From Macrostomum lignano (taxonomy: Eukaryota), in NCBI GenBank assembly GCA_002269645.1, contig NIVC01005014.1, forward strand, positions 27,799-56,328: a stretch of 28,530 nt of DNA. Reading direction: 5' to 3'. Both the position numbers and the translations under genes were made by a program. Below are positions 4,911 to 25,012 of this stretch, piece by piece. Positions within the stretch are counted from its first letter, which is position 1, and each line of letters begins with the position of its first letter. Under the pieces are notes generated by a model. It saw only the letters and a list, made by a program, of their open reading frames with translations, made no database searches and had not been told where the DNA came from.

Positions 4911-4935
4911 CCAATTCTAAGTTACCCTAAAGCAG

Positions 4936-7757
4936 CAATATCAAACCCGTTGCCAACTGCTGGCGGTGTGCCGTCTCAGGCTAAACAAGCTGGGCATCTT
5001 CTGCCTGATAAGTGCAGCGGCACTGCTGTTCCTGCTGCGCACCGAGATGCCCCTGCTAGGCAGAGGCCGCGGCGTCTCAATCAAGGAGCTGCTGTCAGTC
5101 AGCATTGAGCTGTGCGAACGAGCTGGCCAACAGATTTTGCGGCATCGAGCGGCAGCAAAAATTAATAAATCCAGTGCTCAGATTAGCGACTCGGCGCCCC
5201 CAGTTACTAAGGCGGATTTAGCTTCGAATGCCGAATTAGTATTCGGATTTCATAAATCGTTTCCATGGTTACATGTTGTGTCGGAGGAGTCGCAATCGGC
5301 CCCAGTGGATTATCGGGCCCTGGCTTTGGCCAGTCATCGCCATCCAGATTTGGAGCCTTTGAGACACGACTTCTTTGTCAATTCTAACGATGTGCTGGTG
5401 TGGGTGGATCCGCTTGATGGTACGCAAGAGTTTACTGAGCACCTGCTGCAGTACGTGTCTGTTCAGGTGCGTTTTTAATTACCAAGCCGGCTTAACACTT
5501 ATTAATAGATGGCCAAAAAAACGAATAAACTTATTGACTTAGAGGCTTGAAATCTAACTGCTAATATGTGCTTATACGTGAGTAAAATATAGGAGCTATT
5601 GAGACCGGGATGTCAGGAAAAGCTAGACGCAGATGCCGTGAGATAGACAGAGATAGACGTTGCGATGAGGCAGAAAGACAGTGAGATAGAGGCAGAGAGA
5701 CAGTGAGATAGAGGCAGAGACAGTGAGATAGAGGCAGAGATATAGCGAGATAGAAGCAGAGAGACAGTGAGATAGAGGCAGAGACAGTGAGATAGAGGCA
5801 GAGAGAGAGTAAGATAGAGGCAGAGAGACAGTGAGATAGAGGCCGAGAGACAGTGAGATAGAGGCAGACAGTGAGATAGAGGCAGACAGTGAGATAGAGG
5901 CAGAGATATAGTGAGATAGAAGCAGAGAGACAGTGAGATAGAGGCAGAGAGAGAGCAAGATAGAGGCAGAGAGACGGTGAGATAGAGGCCGAGAGACGGT
6001 GAGATAGAGGCAGAGAGACAGTGAAATGCAGCATAGAGACAATGAGTTAGAGGGGAGAAAGAGATTTAGTTAATTAGTTAGAAATCGCACTTATGAAGTA
6101 ATAAGCAAGCAACAATACCTCTAAAACAGGTGTGCGTGGCCTACCGAGGCACACCCCTGCTAGGCGTGCTGCATTTTCCATTCGCTAATAAAACCTATTG
6201 GGCTTGGCGCAATTCTCGCGTATCCGACAGTCTAAAAGAGCAATTAAATTTACCTATTGTGCTGGATAAGCACGTATTAAAATCGGACTCACACATCAAA
6301 GGCGCCGCCGATAAGAGTCACCGACGAAGGCGGGTGCTGATTTCGCGCAGTCATCGGGGCGCTCAATTGAATAGCACGGCTAGAAAATTGTTCCCTAACG
6401 AGTCCGTCGACTTGTTATCGGCTGCCGGGGCGGGTTATAAACTACTGCTGCTTAGTAAGGTAAGAAAAAAGTTTGGAAATTTTACATGTAGTATATGTAG
6501 ACTAGTGTGTGTCCCTCTTCGGAGGATTGTGCAGTTTAACCACTTCAGGCTTGCACCGCGTGACAAGCCGTTTTCTATAAGTCTTGGTGTCTAAACACTT
6601 CTTTAGAAACTCTGGTATCACAGCGATTCCCCGTGAGCCACTTGGCGATTGCATCCTAGCGATTCCCCATGAGCCACTTGGCGATTGCATCCTAGCGATT
6701 CCCCATGAGCCACTTGGCGATTGCATCCTAGCGATTCTCCATGAGCCACTTGGCGATTGCATCCTAGCGATTCCCCATGAGCCACTTGGCGATTGCATCC
6801 TAGCGATTCCCCATGAGCCACTTGGCGATTGCATCCTAGCGATTCCCCATGAGCCACTTGGAATCCTAGCGATTCCCCATGAGCCACTTGGCATCCTAGC
6901 GATTCTCCATGAGCCACTTGGCGATTGCATCCTAGCGATTCCCCATGAGCCAATTGGCATCCTAGCGATTCCCCATGAGCCACTTGGTATCAGGGCGATT
7001 CCCCATGAGCCACTTGGCATCTTAGCGATTCCCCATGAGCCACTTGGCATCCCAGCGATTCCCCATGAGCTACTTGGCATCCTAGCGATTCCCCATGAGC
7101 CACTTGGTATCAGGGCGATTCCCCATGAGCCACTTGGCATCCCAGCGATTCCCCATGAGCCACTTGGCATCCTAGCGATTCCCCATGAGCCACTTGGCAT
7201 CCTAGCGATTCCCCATGAGCCACTTGGCATCCTAACGATTCCCCATGAGCCGTTTGGAATCATAGCAATTCCCTATAAGTCATTTTGTATTTTATAAACT
7301 TCATGTGAGTCATTCAGCATCTCAGCATCCGCTGACGGTTTTTTAGAATGAATTTTGCATTGTATCTGTAGTCTTGTAATCGACATGAGCCATTCGGGTG
7401 TCTTAAAAATTTGAGAGTGTTTCATATATTCATAGGTTATTAATCTAAATATACTAATATACTACTAAAATCCCCACTTGGTTGTTCATTCAGGGATTAG
7501 CTGACAACTATCTCCACGCGGGTCCGATAAAAAAATGGGATCTATGCGCTGGCCAGGCTATCCTAGAAGCCATGGGCGGCCGTCTCAACAGTCTGAGGTC
7601 AATGGGGACAGATTCAACCAGTTCAGGCCATCTGCATCGGATTAACTATGACAATGCCGAGCAGTACAAGCACTCCGATGGCTTCATTGCGTTTGCTCCG
7701 TCGCCGTCGCCTACACCTAAGCGTCCACCAACCAAAGATCCGCGTCTGAGTCAGTAA
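4936..7757 (+). CDS. IMPAD1: Golgi-resident PAP 3'-phosphatase / inositol monophosphatase 3. Exons 4936-5466, 6130-6459, 7494-7757 (~375 aa). No genomic ATG at the start.
   Basis: N-terminal signal anchor (RLRLNKLGIFCLISAAALLFLL) and FIG/IMPase motifs VVSEE, WVDPLDGTQEFTE, GAGYK and KKWDLCAGQAILEAMGG. Phase-0 GT-AG introns 5467-6129 and 6460-7493 join the frames cleanly. The exact 5' start is inferred (AG at 4934-4935). Confidence 0.9.
5638..6025. repeat. Purine-rich ~20-24-bp minisatellite (GTGAGATAGAGGCAGAGAGACA) in IMPAD1 intron 1
   Basis: Tandem units visible directly. Confidence 0.95.
6623..7275. repeat. 36/30-bp minisatellite (GCGATTCCCCATGAGCCACTTGG[CGATTG]CATCCTA) in IMPAD1 intron 2
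   Basis: Tandem units; the 36-bp form dominates at the 5' side and the 30-bp form at the 3' side. Confidence 0.95.
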
Positions 7758-9597: not shown

Positions 9598-9728
9598 TAG
9601 ATTGGCCTGTAATCCTGTAATAGGTATTGCATTACCCCAGGTATTTGGTAAAAAAAAGTCTGCAGTCTACTCGCTAAACACCGTTTTCAGTCCCAGCTAC
9701 CAAGTTCGGCAGGTGATTCCCCACTCAG

Positions 9729-11288
9729 CCGTCGCATCTGACGCTGTCAATTCTGTTAATATCTCTCACAGTACTGATTGTTGCAGTCTACCTGATAGCT
9801 TGTCGTTTGAGTAACAATTGCTTGCTGCGACTTGGCAACCAGCTAATTGGCTTGAGAGACCCGGTGAGGAGGTTTTTTATTTATCTGATATGGCCTTTTC
9901 TGTCGGCAAGAGTTCTCGAGGGTTTGTCACCCTCTCAGATTCTCAAACAGAGTCTGACACCCTCTCAGATTCTCAAACAGAGTCTGACACCCTCTCAGAT
10001 TCTCAAACAGAGTCTGACACCCTCTCAGATTCTCAAACAGAGTCTGACACCCTCTCAGATTCTCAAACAGAGTCTGACACCCTCTCAGATTCTCAAACAG
10101 AGTCTGACACCCTCTCAGATTCTCAAACAGAGTCTGACACCCTCTCAGATTCTAAAACAGAGTCTGACACCCTCTCAGATTCTCAAACAGAGTCTGACAC
10201 CCTCTCAGATTCTAAAACAGAGTCTGACACCCTCTCAGATTCTAAAACAGAGTCTGACACCCTCTCAGATCATCAAACAGAGTCTGACACCCTCTCAGAT
10301 CATCAAACAGAGTCTGACACCCTCTTGCATCCTCAAACTGAGTCTGACACCCTCTCAGATTCTAAAACAGAGTCTGACACCCTCAGATTCTAAAACAGAG
10401 TCTGACACCCTCTCAGATTCTCAAACAGAGTCTGACACCTCTCAGATTCTTAAACAGAGTCTGACACCCTCTCAGATTCTCAAACAGAGTCTGACACCTC
10501 TCAGATTCTTAAAACAGAGTCTGACACCTCTCAGATTCTAAAACAGAGTCTGACACCGTCTCAGACTCTCAAACAGAGTCTGACACCCTCTCAGATTCTT
10601 AAACAGAGTCTGACACCCTCTCAGATTCTCAAACAGAGTCTGACACCCTCTCAGATTCTTAAACAGAGTCTGACACCCTCTCAGATTCTTAAACAGAGTC
10701 TGACACCCTCTCAGATTCTCAAACAGAGTCTGACACCCTTTTTCGCACAGAGCGCAGCCACATCTGAACAGTCGCCTCTCCGGTTGCTATTGGTTACCGC
10801 TCATCCGGACGACGAATGCATGTTCTTTGCGCCTCTATTGTTGGCCCTATCCGCCCAGTCTGAGTCGCCTAGCAACCATCGTTGGGAACTGTATCTGGCC
10901 TGCTTATCCACCGGCAATTATTACGGACTTGGCGATATTCGCGTGTCCGAGCTGACACTCGCTTGGACCGAAGGGTTCGGACAGTCGGTCAATAGGCTTC
11001 GAATAGTGAACGATTCTAGACTTCCGGATAGCAACTCGATTGATTGGCAGGCGGCTCATATTGACGATTGCGTATCTGGACTGATTGACGAGTGGCAGAT
11101 TGACTGCTTAGCCACCTTTGACAGCGGCGGGGTGAGCGGCCACGCCAATCACAGGGCTTTGCAACGCTGGGCTCTGAGCCGCTGCGCCAGCCACCGACTG
11201 CGTCGGGATAGGCCTGTGCCTGTGCTGCTGCTGAGGACTGTCGGACTGGCTAGGAAGTATTCGGGTGAGCTGACTGTCTGTGTGTCAC

Positions 11289-11320
<32 letters not shown>

Positions 11321-11557
11321 TTGTGTGTCTGTCTGTCTGTTTGACTGTCTGTCTGTCTGTCTCTTAATGTCTATCTGACTGTCTGTCTGTTTTTCATGTC
11401 TGTCTGTCTGTCTGTCTGTTATGTGTGTCTGTCTGTCTCTTAATGTCTATCTGACGGTCTGTCTGTTTATCTGTCTGTCTGTCTGTCTGTCTGGTGTCTG
11501 TCCGTCTGGCTGTCTGTTCTGTCTCTCTGTCTGTCTGCCTGTCTGTCTGTCTTTGTG

Positions 11558-11594
<37 letters not shown>

Positions 11595-11986
11595 TAGTGT
11601 ATGTCTCCGTCTGTCTGCCTGCTTCTCTCTTGCTGTCCATTCTTTATGCTTGTCCGTGTTTCTCTGTCTGTCTGTCAATCAAGCGGCCGCTCTCACAACG
11701 CAGACACATCGTAGCCTAACCGAGCGCCACTCTTTTCGTTCACAAACGCCTTGCAGGTGTCCTGGCCATCCTGCCGGCCCTGCTGGAGCATTCTCTGTCG
11801 CATTCGGACCCCTCGCCGGCGACGGCCCTCTTCGTCACGCTTCCCAGCCGCCTCCTGACGCCGCTGCGCTGCATGCGGCACCACCTCAGCCAGCTGGTCT
11901 GGTTCCGCTATCTCTACTGCCTGTTCTCCAGCTACCTGTTGATTAATACGTTCGAAATTTATGGTCTCCATGGCAACGTTAACTAA
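9729..11986 (+). CDS. PIGL: GlcNAc-PI de-N-acetylase. Exons 9729-9863, 10751-11264, 11757-11986 (~293 aa). No genomic ATG at the start.
   Basis: Motifs LLVTAHPDDECMFFAP, CLSTGN, TFDSGGVSGHANH and RKY, plus C-terminal MRHHLSQLVWFRYLYCLFSSYLLINTF, all matching the PIG-L family. Exon 1 (missed by the ORF track) encodes a TM anchor, LTLSILLISLTVLIVAVYLIAC. Donors GTGAGG 9864 (phase 0) and GTGAGC 11265 (phase 1); acceptors CAG 10750 and CAG 11756; stop TAA 11984-11986. Confidence 0.9.
9928..10738. repeat. 30-bp minisatellite (CCCTCTCAGATTCTCAAACAGAGTCTGACA) in PIGL intron 1
   Basis: About 27 units, each with an imperfect internal palindrome TCAGATTC...GAGTCTGA. Confidence 0.95.
11272..11677 (+). 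repeat. Degenerate (TCTG)n microsatellite in PIGL intron 2
   Basis: Seen directly. Confidence 0.95.
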
Positions 11987-12393
11987 TATTAGTAGTAGCC
12001 CTAGTAACCATGGCGACAAGGCGACTCGAAAAGCCGCGCACGAAGCGTTCGTCTCGGGTCACGGCGGATGCAGTCTGGTGGAAATCTGGCTGCATCTCAC
12101 CCTGCCCTGTCTGCTGCTGGCGCTGACCGCTCAGCTGCGATGCTGTTGCCATGGCAACAGTCGTCTGTTGCGTCTGATTGGCTGGCTTGAAGCCGGTCTT
12201 CTCTGCTGCTCGGCGGTGCTGCAGCTGACAGTCCTGGCCGATCACGTGACCGAACTGGTCTGCGCCGCTGCCGCCTGCCTGCTGCTGCTGCTGCCCTTCG
12301 CTCAGCGGAACAACTTTGACTTTGTTGTCGAGCCGCCCCAGCCCAGGCCGCTGTTCAAGGAATTCCAGGTGCGTGACAGACAGACAGACACAC

Positions 12394-12436
<43 letters not shown>

Positions 12437-12439
12437 CAA

Positions 12440-12520
<81 letters not shown>

Positions 12521-12755
12521 AAGACAGACAGACACAGACAGGCAGACAGATAGACAGACAGACAGACAGGCAGACAGATAGACAGACAGACAGACAGACA
12601 GACACAGACAGGCAGACACAGACAGGCAGACACAGACAGACAGACAGACAGACAGACACAGACAGGCAGACACAGACAGGCAGACACAGACAGGCAGACA
12701 CAGACAGGCAGAAACAGACAGGCAGACACAGACAGGCAGACACAGACAGGCAGAC

Positions 12756-12810
<55 letters not shown>

Positions 12811-12823
12811 CAGACAGGCAGAC

Positions 12824-12854
<31 letters not shown>

Positions 12855-15800
12855 TAGACAGACAGACAGACAGGCAGACAGATAGACAGACAGACAGACA
12901 GACAGACACAGACAGGCAGACAGATAGACAGACAGACACAGACAGACAGAGGGACAGACAGACAGACAGGCAGACAGATAGACAGACAGACACAGACAGA
13001 CAGACAGACAGACAGATAGACAAGCAAATAGACAGACGGACAGACAGACGCACACTTCGCCCCAAGCACACAGATTCATCAAGAAAAGAGGTTACACGGA
13101 CAGTCCCCGCCCACCCTTCATTCCGCAGGCCCTCCTGCTGCTGCAGACATCCGTCGCCATTCTGGCCGTGGATTTCCCGGCCATGCCCCGCCGCTTGGCC
13201 AAGGCCGAGTCCGCCGGCGTCGGTCTCATGGACGTCGGCGCTCCGGCGTTTGCCTTCGCCAGCGGCTTGCTGGCGCCGGCGCCGACTCCGTTTTCAATGT
13301 CGCGATGGCGCCGATCCCTGGTTGGCGCCTGTCTGCCGCTGGCGCTGCTCGGACTGGCGAGGACTCTGGCTGTGAAGGCTTCGGATTATCAGGTAATATC
13401 CTGGGATCTTTTAAAGGGATTTTTCTATTCGAGGATTTTTGCTTGAGATTTGGATTTCTAATCTTGCGAATATTTTTGGGAATTTCCATCTTAGGGAAAT
13501 TTTGGGGATTTCCCATTTAAGGGATATTTTGGAAGATTTTTTCTTATTGGGGATTTCTCATCCTTAAGATATTTGGGGATTTCTCATCTTGGGGATATTT
13601 TTGGGGATTTTTCATCTGGGGGATCTTATTGGGGAATTCTCATCTTGGGGATATCTACAGGTATATCTATTAGGGATTTTTATGCTAATGATCTTGTTTG
13701 GAATTTTACATACATTCGAGGCGTTTTATTCCGAGGATGTTGTTGTGGATGAAGGCTAACAACCCCGCCTCCAACCAAACAATCCACGACACGCAGGAGC
13801 ACGTCACCGAGTATGGAGTGCACTGGAACTTCTTCATCACCCTGGCCTGTCTCCGAGCGGTCTGGCCTGCGCTGTCCGGCCGGCCGGGGCTCTGGTCGCT
13901 GGTTCTCGCCGCCGGACACTGCCTCCTGGTGCTGCCGTTCGGTGGGGCCGAGTTTCTTTTGGCTAGCGGCGATCGGCACCTGTTGTGGCCGCTGGTGGCC
14001 AACAAGGAGGGCCTGATGTCGCTGCCGCCCTACTGCGCCATCTATTGCGCCGGCGCCGCTATTGGTCGACGATTGCGCGTCGGAACTGAGTCGACTGCTG
14101 CAGGTGCGACGGGTTTCATTGCTAGGCTAGTATCTCTAGCGTGTCTAGAGATTGAGATCTTTCGACATCGTAAGACTGAGATCTTACTCTATGCGCAGCG
14201 TGTCTATAGACCATGCTCTATATAGCGTGTCTAAAGACCCGGATCTATATAGTATATCTATAGATTGGGATCTATATAGTGTATCTATACTCTATAGACT
14301 GGAATCAATATATGGCGTGTCTATAGACTGGGATCTATGTAGTGTATCTATAGACTGGGATCTATGTAGTGTATCTATAGACTGGGATCTATGTAGTGTA
14401 TCTATAGACTGGGATCTATGTAGTGTATCTATAGACTGGGATCTATGTAGTGTATCTATAGACTGGGATCTATGTAGTGTATCTATAGACTGGGATCTAT
14501 GTAGTGTATCTATAGACTGGGATCTATACAACAAAACAACAGAGTACGCTGCCGGGTCGTAAAAAGCAACGTCAGATGGCACGCTTCGAAGCTTGGGCGC
14601 AAACAAAGGCCGCACCGCCGGCAGAGTCCGGGGCGCCGGCGTCAGCCAGCAGACAGTCGACGTAGCGCCGTGTCCTCGCTTGTCCCCGCCGGTAGGGTGC
14701 CTGCAACGTAAGTAGCAGCACCTCCTGCACCGGCTCCGGACAGTAGGCCTCGGCGCGGATGACGTGGCCTGCCAGCTGGAGTCGCCAACGGCGCAGCAGA
14801 TCGCTAGGACGGGCCAGGCCGGCGCGATGGTAGAGCGCCATGTTGGTGACTCGCTCGTTGCCGATCTTGAAGGCGGCGCGCAGCAGGCCAGCGTGCGCCG
14901 CGTCGACTTGAGCCTCGAGCGAGTCTGTCAGCGTCCAGGTCTCGGCGTTGTATAACAGGACGGTTTCGATCACCGCCTGGAACAGCGCCGCCCTCTGGCG
15001 GTCCGGTAGGGCCTCGGACTGCAGGACTGACCTTATAGAACGAAAGGCAGCCCAGGCAAGTCCTCGGCGACGCCGCAGATCCTCGCGAACGTCGGGAACC
15101 AGACCGCCGAGGTAGACGAACTGCTGACATCTTGGAAGCTCACTCGCCTGTCCGTCAGCGCCTCGGCAGAAGATTGCAACCTCGGTGTCGTCCGGCACGC
15201 ATAGCACGACGGTCTTCTGCGTGTTGACCACCAGGCCGACGCTCGCCGCAACGGCAACCAGCCTATCCAGCTGTCGTTGGGCGCCCTCGACGGTCGAGGA
15301 CAGCAGGGCGAGGTCATCGGCGTAGCCAAGCACGCTGAGCCGTGTCTCCGGTTGGCGTCGACCCACGCGTCGCCGCAGCAGGAAGCCGTCGTCGTTGGAA
15401 GGCAGAGCAGTCCGTAGCACCCAGTCAAGCACCAGAATAATAGCGTCTATGTAGTGTATCTATGTAGTGGATCTATGTAGTGTATCTATAGACTGGGATC
15501 TATGTAGTGTATCTATAGACTGGGATCTATCTATATATAGCGCGTGTTTAGACTGGGATCTATTTATATATGGCGTTTTTTATACTCTAGGATCTATATG
15601 ACGTGTTTATAGACTGGGATCTCTATAGCGTTTCTATAGACTATGATCAATGTTGTCTATAAACAATCAATTTTTGTATTAGGATGTCTATATCATACGA
15701 TCTATAGTGATCTATAGCACAAGTTTCTGAAATAAACTAACAGTTAACCGCTACAATAGAATTATTCAATCCTCTCGTCATCCCAGACGCCAACCGCCTG

Positions 15801-16247
15801 ATCTCGTGGCCCCTGCTACTGCTAGCCATCGTGGCCCTGCCATGGGCCCTGACTGTGGCCTCTGTCAAGTTGCCGCCTATCGTAACTGAGCCTTCTCGGC
15901 TTCTGTTCAATGCCGGATTCCTGATCACCTGCCTAGCCGCCTGCTGTCAGGTGCTGTTGATGCTCACCATCGGCCGGCTGCTCTGCCTCGGCTCCATCGA
16001 TCGGTCGTGTTCGCCTGTGCTAGCTCTGATTGGCCGGTGTAGTCTGGCTTATTTCCTATTGGCTAATCTGCTTACGGGAGCCGTTAATCTGACTGTAGAT
16101 ACTGTGGCAATTAGCGACAAATTAGTTGCTATGGGGATTTTGATTGTTTACCTAATCTGTCTGGTTGGCTCGTTACCGTTGCTGTCTATGGTAATTGGGG
16201 CTTGGCAACAGCGTGGCCTTGCTGGGTCGCGCAGCAAGGCGGAGTGA
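11961..16247 (+). CDS. PIGW: GPI inositol acyltransferase (GWT1/PIG-W). Exons 11961-12368, 13129-13392, 13797-14103, 15787-16247 (~479 aa).
   Basis: Motifs HEAFVSG...LVEI, AILAVDFPAMPRRLAKAE..GVGLMDVG, YQ|EHVTEYGVHWNFFITL, NKEGLMSLPPY.AI, PSRLLFN and YFLLANLLTGAVNL. GT-AG introns 12369-13128, 13393-13796 (both phase 0) and 14104-15786 (phase 1) keep the frame. The start codon is uncertain (11961, 11970, or 12010 with an indel). AATAAA at 16893 and 16902. Confidence 0.9.
12375..13055 (+). repeat. Degenerate (CAGA)n microsatellite in PIGW intron 1
   Basis: Seen directly; it is the reverse complement of the 11272-11677 array. Confidence 0.95.
13401..13680. repeat. Degenerate TTGGGGATTTT-type repeat in PIGW intron 2
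   Basis: Recurrent GGGAT(T/A)TTT cores with irregular spacing. Confidence 0.7.
14130..15715. repeat. 27-bp minisatellite (TAGTGTATCTATAGACTGGGATCTATG) in PIGW intron 3, interrupted by the RTE-like fragment
   Basis: Units on both sides of 14529-15441, degenerating outwards. Confidence 0.9.
14529..15441 (-). mobile_element. 5'-truncated non-LTR retrotransposon (RTE-like), C-terminal half of the reverse transcriptase plus a short 3' tail
   Basis: Uninterrupted minus-strand frame IILVLDWVLR...LGYADDLALL...QQFVYLGG...DLRRRRGLAWAAF...VLLYNAETWTLT...LAGHVIR, ending in a stop at 14572. GC-rich island with sharp borders inside an AT-richer minisatellite. Minus-strand 3' end TGTTGTTTTGTTG. No clear TSD. 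Confidence 0.85.
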
Positions 16248-16371
16248 ACACCTCGTAAAATATGATGCACTGTTTTTTACAGTGGAACTCCTTGTTGCTT
16301 TTTTGACTCTTGATAATTCTCTTCTAAAAATTTCCCTAACTATAAAACTATCAGTCCAAGGGGGACCCAAA

Positions 16372-20235: not shown

Positions 20236-20842
20236 ACTGCGGGCTAGGAGAGGAAAGAAGAGAAAAGGGAGAAGGGAGAGAGGAGATAGAGAGAAGAGAG
20301 GGGAGGAGAGTAGAAGAAAGAAGAGAGCTGAGAAGAGACCATCAGACTTGAGCGAAAAAACCTTCACGCGCGGGAGTTTGCCAACCCTTGCCTAAAATTG
20401 ACCCGGAGCCAGCAAGTATAGGCAAGCGGAGACACTGGTACAAAACGCATGCGGGTACTTTCTCATCGCCAGGCAAGTATTGTATACAAACTTCAGACCA
20501 GTTGTCGTCCAAGAGGCCTAGTGAAAATACTATATATGCCTATCAAGCCTAAGGTGCCCACTAAAGCTGGATCCTCTGATCCAGCAACCTTCCTGCAAAA
20601 CTACCTTTTTCCTATGTACTAAAAATGAGTTGTTTGTTTGTACGAAATCGATTTTCTCCTGAATGGCTTGACCGATTTTGTTCGAATTTGCACTGTTCGA
20701 TCAGAAATTTTCCCGGGACGGTACATGTATCTTGGCTAAGAAATTGATAAATGCTAAAGGGATTAAATATTCGAAAAACATGCTTTTTTGCAATACTAAT
20801 CTAAAAGCTGTCAAATTTTCTCAAACTTTTCTCCACTTCCAG

Positions 20843-23800
20843 ATGGTGGACGTCAAGCTGCTGCTGTTGATTACTCTGGTCTTCATGACCAGGAAGACAA
20901 TCGACTGTCACATCGCTGAAGTCGGAGTTAACGCCGGAGATGCCGCTCCTGCTGGACCACAGCCGGGCAGCCGCATCTCTGTGTCGGATGTCGGGAAGAC
21001 TTCGGTAGTGAATGACGCTCGTCAGTCAAGAGTTGATGTGCGAAGGCTCCCACAGAGCAGTCCGCTGTCACGAGAGCGTCGTTCCGTGTCGAACGATCGA
21101 CGCCTGACTAGAGCTTCTGAGCGTCGTTCCGTGTCGAACGACCGACGCCTCTCTAGGGCTTCTGAGCGTCGCGCTGTGTCGACTGACCGACGTCTGACTA
21201 GAGCTGCTGAGCGTCGCGCTGTGTCGACTGACCGTCGTCTGACTAGAGCTGCTAAGCATCGCGCTGTGTCGATGGACCGACGGCTGTCACGAGAGCGTCG
21301 TTCCGTGTCGAACGACCGACGTCTGACTAGGGCTGCTGAGCGTCGCGCAGTGTCGACTGACCGACGTCTGACTAGAGCTGCTGATCGTCGCGCTGTGTCG
21401 ACTGACCGACGTCTGACTAGAGCTGCTGAGCGTCGCGCTGTGTCGACTGACCGACGTCTGACTAGAGCTGCTGAGCGTCGCGTTGTGTCGATGGACCGAC
21501 GGCTGTCACGAGAGCGTCGCTCCGTGTCGAACGACCGACGCCTGACTAGAGCTGCTGAGCGTCGCGCTGTGTCGACTGACCGACGTCTGACTAGAGCTGC
21601 TGAGCGTCGCGCTGTGACGACTGACCGACGGCTGTCACGAGAGCGTCGTTCCGTGTCGAACGACCGACGTCTGACTAGGGCTGCTGAGCGTCGCGCAGTG
21701 TCGACTGACCGACGTCTGACTAGAGCTGCTGAGCGTCGCGCTGTGTCGACTGACCGACGGCTGTCACGAGAGCGTCGTTCTGTGTCGAACGACCGACCTC
21801 TGACTAAGGCTGCTGAGCGTCGCGCTGTGTCGACTGACCGACGTCTGACTAGAGCTGCTGAGCGTCGCGCTGTGTCGACCGACCGACGTCTGACTAGAGC
21901 TGCTGAGCGTCGCGCTGTGTCGATGGACCGACGGCTGTCACGAGAGCGTCGTTCCGTGTCGAACGACCGACGTCTGACTAGAGCTGCTGAGCGTCGCGCT
22001 GTGTCGATGGACCGACGGCTGTCACGAGAGCGTCGCTCCGTGTCGAACGACCGACGCCTGACTAGAGCTGCTGAGCGTCGCGCTGTGTCAACTGACCGAC
22101 GTCTGACTAGAGCTGCTGAGCGTCGCGCTGTGACGACTGACCGACGGCTGACTAGAGCTTCTGAGCGTCGTTCCGTGTCGAACGACCGACGCCTGACTAG
22201 AGCTGCTGAGCGTCGCGCTGTGTCGACTGACCGACGTCTGACTAGAGCTGCTGAGCGTCGCGTTGTGTCGATGGACCGACGGCTGTCACGAGAGCGTCGT
22301 TCCGTGTCGAACGACCGACGCCTAACTAGAGCTGCTGAGCGTCGGGCTGTGTCGACTGACCGACGTCTGACTAGAGCTGCTGAGCGTCGCGCTGTGACGA
22401 CTGACCGACGGCTGTCACGAGAGCGTCGTTCCGTGTCGAACGACCGACGTCTGACTAGGGCTGCTGATCGTCGCGCTGTGTCGACTGACCGACGTCTGAC
22501 TAGAGCTGCTGAGCGTTGCGCTGTGTCGACTGACCGACGTCTGACTAGAGCTGCTGAGCGTCGCGTTGTGTCGATGGACCGACGGCTGTCACGAGAGCGT
22601 CGTTCCGTGTCGAACGACCGACGCCTGACTAGAGCTGCTGAGCGTCGCGCTGTGTCGACTGACCGACGTCTGACTAGAGCTGCTGAGCGTCGCGCTGTGT
22701 CGATGGACCGACGGCTGTCACGAGAGCGTCGTTCCGTGTCGAACGACCGACGTCTGACTAGGGCTGCTGAGCGTCGCGCTGTGTCGACTGACCGACGTCT
22801 GACTAGAGCTGCTGAGCGTCGCGCTGTGTCGACTGACCGACGGCTGTCACGAGAGCCTCGTTCCGTGTCGAACGACCGAGGTCTGACTAGAGCTGCTGAG
22901 CGTCGCGCAGTGTCGACTGACCGACGTCTGACTAGAGCTGCTGAGCGTCGCGCTGTGTCGATGGACCGACGGCTGTCACGAGAGCGTCGTTCCGTGTCGA
23001 ACGACCGACGTCTGACTAAGGCTGCTGAGCGTCACGCTGTGTCGACTGACCGACGTCTGACTAGAGCTGCTGAGCGTCGCGCTGTCTCGACTGACCGACG
23101 TCTGACTAGAGCTGCTGAGCGTCGCGCTGTGTCGACTGACCGACGGCTGTCACGAGAGCGTCGTTCTGTGTCGACTGACCGACGTCTGACTAGAGCTGCT
23201 GAGCGTCGCGCTGTGTCGATGGACCGACGGCTGTCACGAGAGCGTCGTTCCGTGTCGAACGACCGACGTCTGACTAGAGCTGCTGAGCGTCGCGCTGTGT
23301 CGATGGACCGACGGCTGTCACGAGAGCGTCGCTCCGTGTCGAACGACCGACGCCTGACTAGAGCTGCTGAGCGTCGCGCTGTGACGACTGACCGACGGCT
23401 GACTAGAGCTTCTGAGCGTCGTTCCGTGTCGAACGACCGACGCCTCTCTAGGGCTTCTGTGCGTCGCGCTGTGTCGACTGACCGACGTCTGACTAGAGCT
23501 GCTGAGCGTCGCGTTGTGTCGACTGACCGACGGCTGTCACGAGAGCGTCGTTCCGTGTCGAACAACCGACGTCTGACTAGGGCTGCTGAGCGTCGCGCTG
23601 TGTCGACTGACCGACGTTTGACTAGAGCTGCTGAGCGTCGCGCTGTGTCGACTGACCGACGTCTGACTAGAGCTGCTGAGCGTCGCGCTGTGTCGACTGA
23701 CCGACGGCTGTCACGAGAGCGTCGTTCCGTGTCGACTGACCTGCGTCTGACTAGGGCTGCTGAGCGTCGCGCTGTGTCGACTGACCGACGTCTGACTAGA

Positions 23801-25012
23801 GCTGCTGAGCGTCGCGCTGTGTCGACTGACCGACGTCTGACTAGAGCTGCTGAGCGTCGCGTTGTGTCGATGGACCGACGGCTGTCACGAGAACGTCGTT
23901 CCGTGTCGAACGACCGACGCCTGACTAGGGCTGCTGAGCGTCGAGCTGTGTCGACTGACCGACGTCTGACTAGAGCTGCTGAGCGTCGCGTTGTGTCGAT
24001 GGACCGACGGCTGTCACGAGAACGTCGTTCCGTGTCGAACGACCGACGCCTGACTATGGCTGCGGAGCGAGTCCATTTGTCCAAGCAGTCAAAGCGCGTT
24101 ACCAATTTTGGCTCCCAGCCGGTGCTCAGCACAAAATCATCCAGCACTAAGTTCGACGTCGTTATTGAAGAGCCCTCCGTTCTTAACAGCTCTCGACTCA
24201 TCTCACTTGGCAAACCTGATCATCAGACTGTGTCGCTACCGAGTCAGCCGACCGTCAATTTCGACAAGACCTTGTCCACTTTGCTGGCCTCCGACGAACT
24301 GACCCGTCAAGTGCCGAGCGCTTCACTCAAACAGAAGATTCTGTGGCAGATTGGCTCAGCTGTGGGAGCTGTTTCGAGGTGGGTTTCATTGTGTCATCTT
24401 GTAGGGTGAGATTCAGGAACGCTCATAGGTGAGATTCAGGAACGCTCATAGGTGAGATTCAGAAACGCTCATAGGTGAGATTCAGGAATGCTCATAGGTG
24501 AGATTCAGCAATGCTCATAGGTGAGATTCAGGAATGCTCATAGGTGAGATTCAGGAATCTCATAGGTGAGATTCAGGAATGCTCATAGGTGAGATTCAGG
24601 AATGCTCATATATATGGGATTCAGGAATGGTAATATAAAAGATTCGGGAATGTTTCATATTCTGATATAGGAGATTCAGAAATTCAGATATATGAGAATC
24701 AGGAATCTTCATATATGAGATTCAGGAATGCTGATATATCACGAGTTTCAGGAACGCTCATAGCTGTTATTCTGAATAGGCTCCTGTATCTCATCCTTAT
24801 CTTCTAAGGCTGGAATTGAGACGGGATGTCTAATAAAATTTTGATCGAACTGCTTCAACAAATCTAGAAATACGCATGCAGGCACCGAATAATTTAAGCA
24901 CCCGGTTTCATCTTGCAGCTACTCGGCGGACTTCGCCCAATTTGGAATTGCCGGCGGCGCTGCCCTGGTTGCCATGGCAACCAATCGTCGGGGCAAATCG
25001 GTCCTCTGCTAA
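20843..25012 (+). CDS. Putative secreted or surface Arg-rich tandem-repeat protein (~1,210 aa). Exons 20843-24378 (or -24405) and 24919-25012.
   Basis: A pyrimidine tract and CAG acceptor lie directly before ATG 20843. Signal-peptide-like start MVDVKLLLLITLVFMTRKTIDC. About 3 kb of 45-nt and 39-nt units (RRAVSTDRRLTRAAE / RRSVSNDRR / LSRE) with no stop and many synonymous variants, then a unique C-terminal region. Phase-2 donor to acceptor TTGCAG 24918 gives YSADFAQFGIAGGAALVAMATNRRGKSVLC, stop 25010-25012. Confidence 0.7.
24403..24765. repeat. 23-bp minisatellite (AGGTGAGATTCAGGAATGCTCAT) in the last intron of the Arg-rich gene
   Basis: Tandem units, degenerating towards the 3' end. Confidence 0.9.

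Follow-up and report, generated by a model that had tools for sequence, protein, structure and literature searches.

PIGL and PIGW, genes for successive GPI-anchor enzymes, probably form a spliced-leader operon without a real intercistronic spacer in Macrostomum lignano

The stretch of Macrostomum lignano contig NIVC01005014.1 analysed here (the window, 28,530 nucleotides) carries an IMPAD1-like gene, PIGL and PIGW in this order on the plus strand, on which all gene features given below lie. The PIGL-PIGW locus is carried by four assembly contigs, the window, L008, L002 and L003; a further record, L001, corresponds to window positions 1961-26247 with no differences. L008 is a 99.8% near-duplicate of the window, from which it departs chiefly in 23 small gaps over 14.7 kb; L002 and L003 are diverged copies, their exons differing by 0.4-2.6%. 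PIGL and PIGW are intact in every genomic copy, lie on the same strand and abut each other. An Rfam search of the window returned no matches, and an antisense ORF at 11693-12019 has no Pfam match.

The IMPAD1-like gene, of the inositol monophosphatase family (Pfam PF00459), spans 4966-7757 with exons at 4966-5466, 6130-6459 and 7494-7757. The L003 version of this exon model exactly matches PAA76378.1 (BOX15_Mlig004071g8). A genomic ATG was sought before its transmembrane (TM) helix and not found, and the NCBI coding sequence is marked 'partial' from its first codon (5'-partial).

PIGL consists of three exons. Exon 1 (9691-9863) encodes an N-terminal TM anchor and has an alternative start at 9729; exon 2 (10751-11264, splice sites cacag/ and /gtgagc) encodes the catalytic PIG-L domain with the AHPDDE motif; exon 3 (11757-11986, acceptor ttgcag/ at 11757) encodes the conserved SQLVWFRYLYCLFSSYLLINT motif followed by an 11-residue tail, and its 3' end reads GGC AAC GTT AAC TAA, with the stop codon at 11984-11986. 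The ORF at 10784-11344 matches Pfam PIG-L (PF02585) above the gathering score (E=7.4e-16), and VTAHPDDE is present. By these features and its C-terminal motif PIGL belongs to the PIG-L family of GlcNAc-PI de-N-acetylases. Identity to animal and fungal PIGL is 39-40%, and the C-terminus aligns with 14 homologues, including the conserved eukaryotic SQxxWFRxLYxxFSxYxxxN motif. Intron 2 is almost wholly a CTGT microsatellite (11270-11621), leaving ~135 nt of unique sequence.

As in the IMPAD1-like gene, no genomic ATG was found before the TM anchor in PIGL exon 1. The spliced leader (SL) of M. lignano is 35 nt long and ends in ATG (CGGTCTCTTACTGCGAAGACTCAATTTATTGCATG, 3' end …CAATTTATTGCATG), and its acceptors follow the motif YTNCAG (PMC8629364); an SL-like sequence was looked for in the window and none was found. 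TTTCAG at 9685-9690 fits this motif and is a candidate SL trans-splice acceptor of PIGL. If the SL is joined at TTTCAG/9691, its 3' AUG is in frame with a run of five C, giving MSQLPSSAGDSPTQPSHLTLSILL..., and two ML2 gene models, P0002 and P0125, start 6 nt upstream of this junction. A second acceptor, cag/9729, is in frame regardless of the version. The C-run at 9720-9723 has four C in the window and five in L002, L003 and L008; the window is probably one C short owing to an assembly indel.

PIGW follows with four exons. Exon 1, as annotated, spans 11961-12368, and its conserved core begins at 12030 (KAAHEAFVS); exons 2 (13129-13392), 3 (13797-14103) and 4 (15787-16247) complete the gene, which ends with TGA at 16245-16247. 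The GWT1 profile (PF06423) is matched by the four exons in succession at profile positions 2-90, 129-209, 206-304 and 323-432, which together cover positions 2-432 of 437. Identity to animal PIGW is 29-36% over ~90% of the length. With this full-length match and its N-terminal (K/H)ExFV motif, PIGW is classified as a GWT1/PIG-W family member. Its spliced model is 100% identical, over the full length, to PAA46177.1 (BOX15_Mlig010665g2), for which the annotated start is ATG 11961; P0001 is likewise 100% identical. The nearest poly(A)-like hexamer after the gene is TATAAA at 16341. All five bona fide introns of PIGL and PIGW have CAG at the 3' end and are 404-1683 nt long; three of their donors are of the GTG[AC]G type and the other two begin gtgcgt and gtaata.

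The junction between the two genes lies in one continuous exon block. HEAFVS (CAC at 12039) is read in a frame that opens at 11943, after a TGA at 11940-11942, and this frame contains two ATGs, at 11961 and 11970 (11961-11972), inside the PIGL coding sequence. The two coding sequences overlap in different frames, by 26 nt counted from ATG 11961 and by 17 nt from ATG 11970. A third ATG, at 12010 in AACCATGG, has a strong Kozak context and stands 23 nt past the PIGL stop, in a frame that differs from that of HEAFVS. The block from 11757 to 12368 can be read without an intron signal, and no AATAAA/ATTAAA-type hexamer occurs in 11800-12368, a result to be read with the reservation that the poly(A)-signal preference of the species may differ. 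All of this agrees with a preliminary description of the locus, which had reported the PIGL stop, the open PIGW frame with its two ATGs, the 26-nt overlap and HEAFVS at these positions, a continuous exon block without a poly(A) signal, and ATG 12010 only ~23 nt beyond the PIGL stop. The chance of a 22-codon open stretch upstream of the conserved PIGW start is ~0.35, so that the upstream in-frame ATGs are not by themselves evidence of use. Chance does not easily explain, on the other hand, why consecutive pathway enzymes abut on the same strand and have been kept so in three diverged copies.

What puts ATG 12010 out of the PIGW frame is an 8-nt tandem duplication at 12010-12025, ATGGCGAC/AAGGCGAC. 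All four contigs have the duplication, and 4.1 kb of exon sequence contains just one other event of this kind. When one 8-nt unit is deleted, AACCATGGCGACTCGAAAA… reads MATRKAAHEAFVSGHGG, restoring AACCATGG…MATRKAAHEAFVS, an N-terminus typical of PIGW. In homologues the start lies 7-8 residues ahead of the E in (K/H)ExFV, as in mollusc MATYKFHHEHFV, and the restored N-terminus fits the length and pattern of PIGW elsewhere (mollusc MATYKFHHEHFVAGHEG, amphioxus MSYKTEKEAFVS). We infer that the ancestral PIGW start codon stood 23 nt past the PIGL stop and was shifted out of frame by the duplication.

The preliminary description had instead considered a single base missing after 12014. Homopolymer indel errors do exist in this assembly, as seen in the gaps between the window and L008 and in the short C-run at 9720-9723, and with an indel at the junction the real PIGW would start at an in-frame ATG 12010. 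However, positions 11900-12080 are base-identical across the window, L008, L002 and L003, two of them diverged copies, bar one synonymous G>A in L003, and independent protein models from the older ML2 assembly run through the same junction bases, reading PSNHGDKATRKAAHEAFVS. Moreover, long-read errors do not typically take the form of an 8-nt non-homopolymer duplication like the one behind the offset. We therefore give up the missing base, and consider it extremely improbable that the junction is an assembly artefact.

Codon changes between the copies number 17 synonymous versus 10 non-synonymous in PIGW (binomial p=3e-5 against a neutral 25:75) and seven versus seven in PIGL (p=0.04). Neither gene contains a frameshift or a stop in L002 or L003. 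Judged from these changes, purifying selection acts on PIGL and PIGW in three copies, and both genes are functional. Given that the duplication is present in all four contigs and that selection has acted on the gene, PIGW has stayed functional with its present junction and must initiate in a non-canonical way.

How, then, is PIGW expressed? In the Mlig_3_7 annotation, transcriptional units were assembled and cut into genes at experimental SL and poly(A) peaks, with a common prefix per unit (PMC5730564). An exact look-up on three contigs gives the names of the IMPAD1-like gene and PIGW as Mlig007363g1 and g2, Mlig004071g8 and g9, and Mlig004071g4 and g3. In the transcriptional unit shared with PIGW, the IMPAD1-like gene comes first among the annotated genes, and PIGL sits between the two, unnumbered; at NCBI PIGL has neither a gene number nor a protein. 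Indirectly, this points to a single transcriptional unit comprising the IMPAD1-like gene, PIGL and PIGW that has been cut only once. The shared numbering marks one cut between the IMPAD1-like gene and PIGW, not its position; if the cut falls at the PIGL acceptor, the annotated mature transcript is dicistronic. The distance from the IMPAD1-like gene to PIGL is 1.9 kb, or ~1.1 kb after subtraction of a tandem repeat, which borders the published 1-kb operon criterion. As PIGL and the IMPAD1-like gene lack genomic ATGs, at least these two would depend on the SL.

A mature mRNA that is truly dicistronic and SL-capped would yield PIGW by termination-reinitiation, with ribosomes moving back to AUG 11961 or 11970, or by internal entry. 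Such an mRNA would be in keeping with an annotation that lacks a separate PIGL and runs the PIGW coding sequence from the first ATG of its open frame, with the lack of a poly(A) hexamer between the ORFs, and with the overlap of the stop and start regions. However, reinitiation after an ORF of ~300 codons is inefficient without dedicated signals, and a TURBS-type signal was not found: UGGGA, the TURBS motif 1 (TGGGA in the DNA), is absent in 11757-11990, and the AUGs precede the stop by 17 and 26 nt. SL trans-splicing is moreover already at hand in M. lignano to resolve such pairs, and a peak-calling pipeline could easily miss the low-abundance SL site of a weakly expressed gene. We regard a functional dicistronic mRNA as very unlikely.

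UniProt and WormBase ParaSite hold a fused PIGL-PIGW model (P0002). In this model, as in P0124 and P0125, a 49-nt GT..AG 'intron' at 11950-11998 (…LLINT/PSNHGDKATRK…) removes the last 11 codons of PIGL together with its stop, so that a bifunctional protein would be read through the in-frame join …LLINT/PSNHGDKATRKAAHEAFVS…. The GT..AG borders are present, the frames join exactly, and a branch-point-like CTAAT precedes the acceptor by 12-13 nt; a fusion would also account for translation of PIGW without a start of its own, for the lack of a poly(A) signal and for the lack of an SL cut in the annotation. The donor GTTCGA, however, is off the species consensus GT[GA]AG, and the real introns of these genes are 404-1683 nt long. 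The three models do not support the fusion independently, because they are the same prediction made on near-identical sequence. Among the best 120 PIGL and the best 120 PIGW matches, PF02585 and PF06423 are never combined elsewhere. The C-terminus of PIG-L is cytoplasmic according to the UniProt topology. PIG-L also works on the cytoplasmic face (PMC7125958), and the N-terminus of GWT1 is luminal by cryo-EM (PMC11502805); a direct fusion of a cytoplasmic C-terminus to a luminal N-terminus would therefore invert PIGW. Chimeric models are in addition a known artefact at flatworm operons, and indeed a recognised sign of them (PMC12582326). The 49-nt intron is probably an artefact of chimeric modelling, and a genuine bifunctional fusion seems distinctly unlikely to us. 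Cis-splicing from the donors of PIGL exons 1 and 2 into the junction was likewise considered; only the poor AAG acceptors at 12021 and 12034 keep the frame, the products would gain or lose TM segments, and this reading was set aside.

In M. lignano 30% of genes are trans-spliced and 15% lie in operons, whose modal repeat-adjusted spacer is ~100 bp (PMC8629364). Spacers of <=300 bp (PMC12582326) or of <1 kb after repeat adjustment (PMC8629364) have been used as criteria for operons. With the PIGL stop at 11986 and the PIGW coding start between 11961 and 12021, the pair falls within these short-spacer, same-strand limits. Given the documented SL operons of M. lignano and the shared transcriptional unit, a trans-spliced operon is therefore the best reading of the locus. 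We consider it probable that PIGL and PIGW are adjacent cistrons of one SL operon without a real intercistronic spacer, the order of the operon probably being IMPAD1-like, PIGL, PIGW. A single pre-mRNA would run across the genes and be processed by SL trans-splicing, and PIGL would initiate on the terminal AUG of the SL by way of its consensus acceptors. The preliminary description had proposed an operon or dicistronic mRNA resolved either by trans-splicing or by reinitiation; the former is retained on the grounds just given, while the latter loses its footing with the absence of UGGGA and with AUGs that precede the stop. The lack of a poly(A) hexamer for PIGL in 11800-12368 speaks against the operon.

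We listed every AG between 11757 and 12045 as a possible SL acceptor for PIGW. CTCCAG at 11926-11931 (exon start 11932), inside the last PIGL exon, is the sole match to YTNCAG between 11757 and 12219 and follows an 83% pyrimidine tract. This tract encodes the conserved PIGL residues YLYCLFSS; because conserved PIGL codons fully account for it, its acceptor-like character is not independent support. An SL joined at 11932 would read a five-codon uORF from its AUG (MLPVD, then a stop), after which AUG 11961/11970 is reached. Further downstream, a branch-point-like TTAACTAAT is followed by four TAG acceptors (11979-12004; AG at 11991, 11994, 11997 and 12003). A start on the SL AUG is ruled out at all four, as each meets an immediate stop (M-stop, M-stop, MP-stop and M-stop). 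The TAG arrangement would suit the ancestral ATG 12010, which now yields a 38-codon out-of-frame ORF. The only AG in 11757-12045 that brings the SL AUG into frame with PIGW is that of AAG at 12019-12020, where the product begins MATRKAAHEAFVS; as an acceptor AAG/12021 is weak, with 44% pyrimidine, the triplet AAG and a position downstream of the four TAGs.

Within the operon, PIGW could thus be reached by two routes. In route (a) the SL would be added inside the last PIGL exon, the best candidate being CTCCAG/11932, and after the short uORF translation would begin at AUG 11961 or 11970, within the final 26 nt of PIGL coding sequence. Each pre-mRNA would then give a PIGL mRNA or a PIGW mRNA, never both. 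In route (b) the SL would be added at AAG/12021, and its AUG would rebuild the ancestral N-terminus MATRKAAHEAFVS. All PIGW coding sequences in the annotation are complete ORFs that begin at 11961, in contrast to the 5'-partial IMPAD1-like one, so the 5' end of the annotated transcript lies upstream of 11961. Route (a) is for this reason slightly favoured over (b), and the upstream 5' end is a mild argument against a dominant SL site at 11993-12021. Only tentatively do we suggest that the products are mutually exclusive because an SL inside the PIGL exon destroys the PIGL message, or that the SL supplies the lost start at an AG which came into being at the site of the ancestral ATG (ATG to AAG, following the 8-nt duplication).

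Alternatively, PIGL and PIGW may be independent overlapping genes, with a PIGW promoter and transcription start in PIGL intron 2 or exon 3 and PIGL polyadenylated within PIGW. The PIGL poly(A) site would in that case lie inside the first exon or an intron of PIGW, and there would be no operon. In M. lignano 70% of genes are not trans-spliced, and AUGs 11961 and 11970 would be the first usable ones of a transcript beginning just upstream. PIGL-PIGW adjacency was looked for in Lymnaea, Lingula and Actinia and was not found; in Lingula and Actinia PIGW stands head-to-head with REX1B. The adjacency in M. lignano is therefore derived, not ancestral, and could reflect a chance rearrangement; the synteny check in lophotrochozoans proposed earlier thus came out negative in Lymnaea and Lingula. 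Separate genes are harder to reconcile, however, with the prefix and consecutive numbers shared with the upstream gene on three contigs and with the SL dependence of PIGL and the IMPAD1-like gene, which lack genomic ATGs; and a promoter would have to fit into the ~135 nt of unique sequence that the microsatellite leaves in PIGL intron 2. We hold independent genes to be unlikely.

A short ENA cluster member (P0126/L004) was discarded as a cDNA of the locus, its sequence being unrelated, and when the PIGW N-terminus served as a protein query for Logan/ENA cDNA fragments, distant homologues alone came back. Proteins of other flatworms or other Macrostomum species were absent among the matches listed. 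PIGL, PIGW and the Mlig identifiers are absent from the M. lignano paper supplements and full-text literature searched, and the supplementary text files of the parasitic-flatworm SL paper contain no GWT1, PIGW, PIGL or de-N-acetylase entry.

Functionally linked genes in one operon are rare in animals. Successive GPI-anchor enzymes in one operon would make a tidy case for the debate on functional grouping in metazoan operons. In GPI synthesis PIGL carries out step 2 and PIGW catalyses the step that comes next once flipping has taken place; the human genes are separate, on 17p and 17q (PMC7125958); the earlier placing of the two as consecutive steps encoded at separate human loci is essentially right. 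The junction is also a natural experiment, in which the PIGW start codon has been frameshifted by a duplication and the gene is still under selection. It illustrates how SL trans-splicing can buffer or rescue the loss of a start codon, through internal acceptors, minimal uORFs or an SL-donated AUG. If either of the mutually exclusive routes is true, the locus offers a concrete, datable operon junction that is evolving SL dependence for translation, and two successive pathway steps would be coupled in a hard-wired way. Public annotation is wrong or incomplete here: the NCBI set lacks PIGL, and UniProt shows it as a fusion with PIGW. M. lignano serves as a model for transgenesis.

How does this arrangement compare with known systems? 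Novelty was implied in the preliminary description, yet operons are already known in M. lignano, where two- and three-gene operons are usual (Wudarski et al. 2017; Ustyantsev & Berezikov 2021); only the PIGL-PIGW pairing and its junction are new. As in those operons, of the same species and with the same 35-nt SL, the genes are same-strand neighbours in one annotated transcriptional unit, and YTNCAG-type acceptors are present. In contrast to them, the spacer is ~0 (anything between a 26-nt overlap and +34 nt) where the mode is ~100 bp, there is apparently no annotated SL or poly(A) site between the cistrons, and the canonical ATG of the downstream ORF is out of frame. The overlap of the ORF1 stop with the ORF2 start region in another frame recalls calicivirus TURBS and RSV M2-1/M2-2, but PIGL-PIGW is cellular, its upstream ORF is long and the TURBS motif is absent, so that the likeness to viral termination-reinitiation is geometric only.

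The use of the SL AUG as initiator has been documented in flatworms, including Schistosoma (Cheng et al. 2006, as cited in PMC9851317 and PMC12582326). As far as those citing accounts describe it, the initiation reported by Cheng, Cohen, Ndegwa & Davis 2006 resembles that expected of PIGL and the IMPAD1-like gene, which lack a genomic ATG and have acceptors in frame; here SL-AUG initiation is putative in all three genes, and the PIGW acceptor AAG/12021 is non-consensus. In S. mansoni the spacer is at least 5 bp in 45/45 analysed operon pairs (PMC12582326). A similar geometry is that of the zero-spacer operons of the C. elegans SL1 type and of Ciona intestinalis, which, as outlined in PMC12582326 (Williams 1999; Satou 2006), have no intercistronic sequence; as in these operons, formation of the PIGL 3' end and SL acceptance by PIGW would need nearly the same place. 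In the C. elegans and Ciona operons, as described there, the acceptor directly adjoins the poly(A) site of the upstream gene, past the stop codon (PMC12582326), whereas in PIGL-PIGW the productive acceptor would lie inside the upstream coding sequence, or at a weak AAG 34 nt past the stop.

The 5' end (4930-4970) of the IMPAD1-like gene, whose exons lie at 4966-5466, 6130-6459 and 7494-7757 (span 4966-7757), contains no genomic ATG upstream of the transmembrane helix, and the NCBI CDS is labelled 'partial', with VCRL as its first residues. The gene model of the older ML2 assembly begins LQ|AVCRL, corresponding to CTGCAG|GCG, a consensus acceptor that puts the AUG of the 35-nt spliced leader (SL) in frame. 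At the position of this acceptor the AG is absent in all three contigs of the present assembly, Mlig_3_7, that cover the region (the window and its identical locus L001, the diverged copy L003 and the near-duplicate L008), which read CTGCTGGCG. A further in-frame candidate acceptor, aaagcag|, lies 30 nt upstream.

Homopolymer runs near the PIGL start vary in length between contigs. The C-run at 9720-9723 has four C in the window versus five in L002 (the other diverged copy), L003 and L008, and the A-run at 9640-9647 has eight A versus seven in L002 and L003. These differences, together with the 23 gaps over 14.7 kb that separate the window from L008, its 99.8% near-duplicate, show that indel errors remain in the M. 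lignano assembly. With the four-C version of the run, an SL-AUG joined at 9691 is out of the PIGL frame.

At the PIGL/PIGW junction, CCATGGC[A/G]AC occurs twice, 40 nt apart (11967-11976 and 12007-12016), and Met-Ala-Thr is the predicted peptide start from both copies as well as from the SL-AUG reading at 12021. The introns flanking the PIGL-e3/PIGW-e1 exon block are taken up almost wholly by microsatellites, (CTGT)n at 11270-11621 and (GACA)n at 12375-13049. These are mutual reverse complements, and the two introns could pair in the pre-mRNA, looping out the junction exon. Further downstream, PIGW intron 3 holds a minus-strand reverse-transcriptase fragment (14572-15432; RVT_1, scoring under the gathering score) with 27-nt tandem repeats on both sides (14203-14527 and 15446-15530).

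On the same strand as the IMPAD1-like gene and upstream of it lies a single-exon claudin-like gene (PF13903; 2345-3061), with an AATAAA 283 nt past its stop codon. This gene probably forms a unit of its own. A 1243-codon ORF at 20678-24409, with a GC content of about 62%, is built from a 45-nt repeat (…ERRAVSTDRRLTRAA…) that recurs about 68 times. It carries protein annotation in three contigs (979, 663 and 1018 aa), and its Pfam match is weak, no single stretch passing alone.

In Lingula anatina and Actinia tenebrosa (L006 4409-8634 and L007 6505-9507, respectively) PIGW stands head-to-head with a REX1B (PF14966) gene, and the two may form a bidirectional pair of ancient origin, which the M. 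lignano locus lacks.
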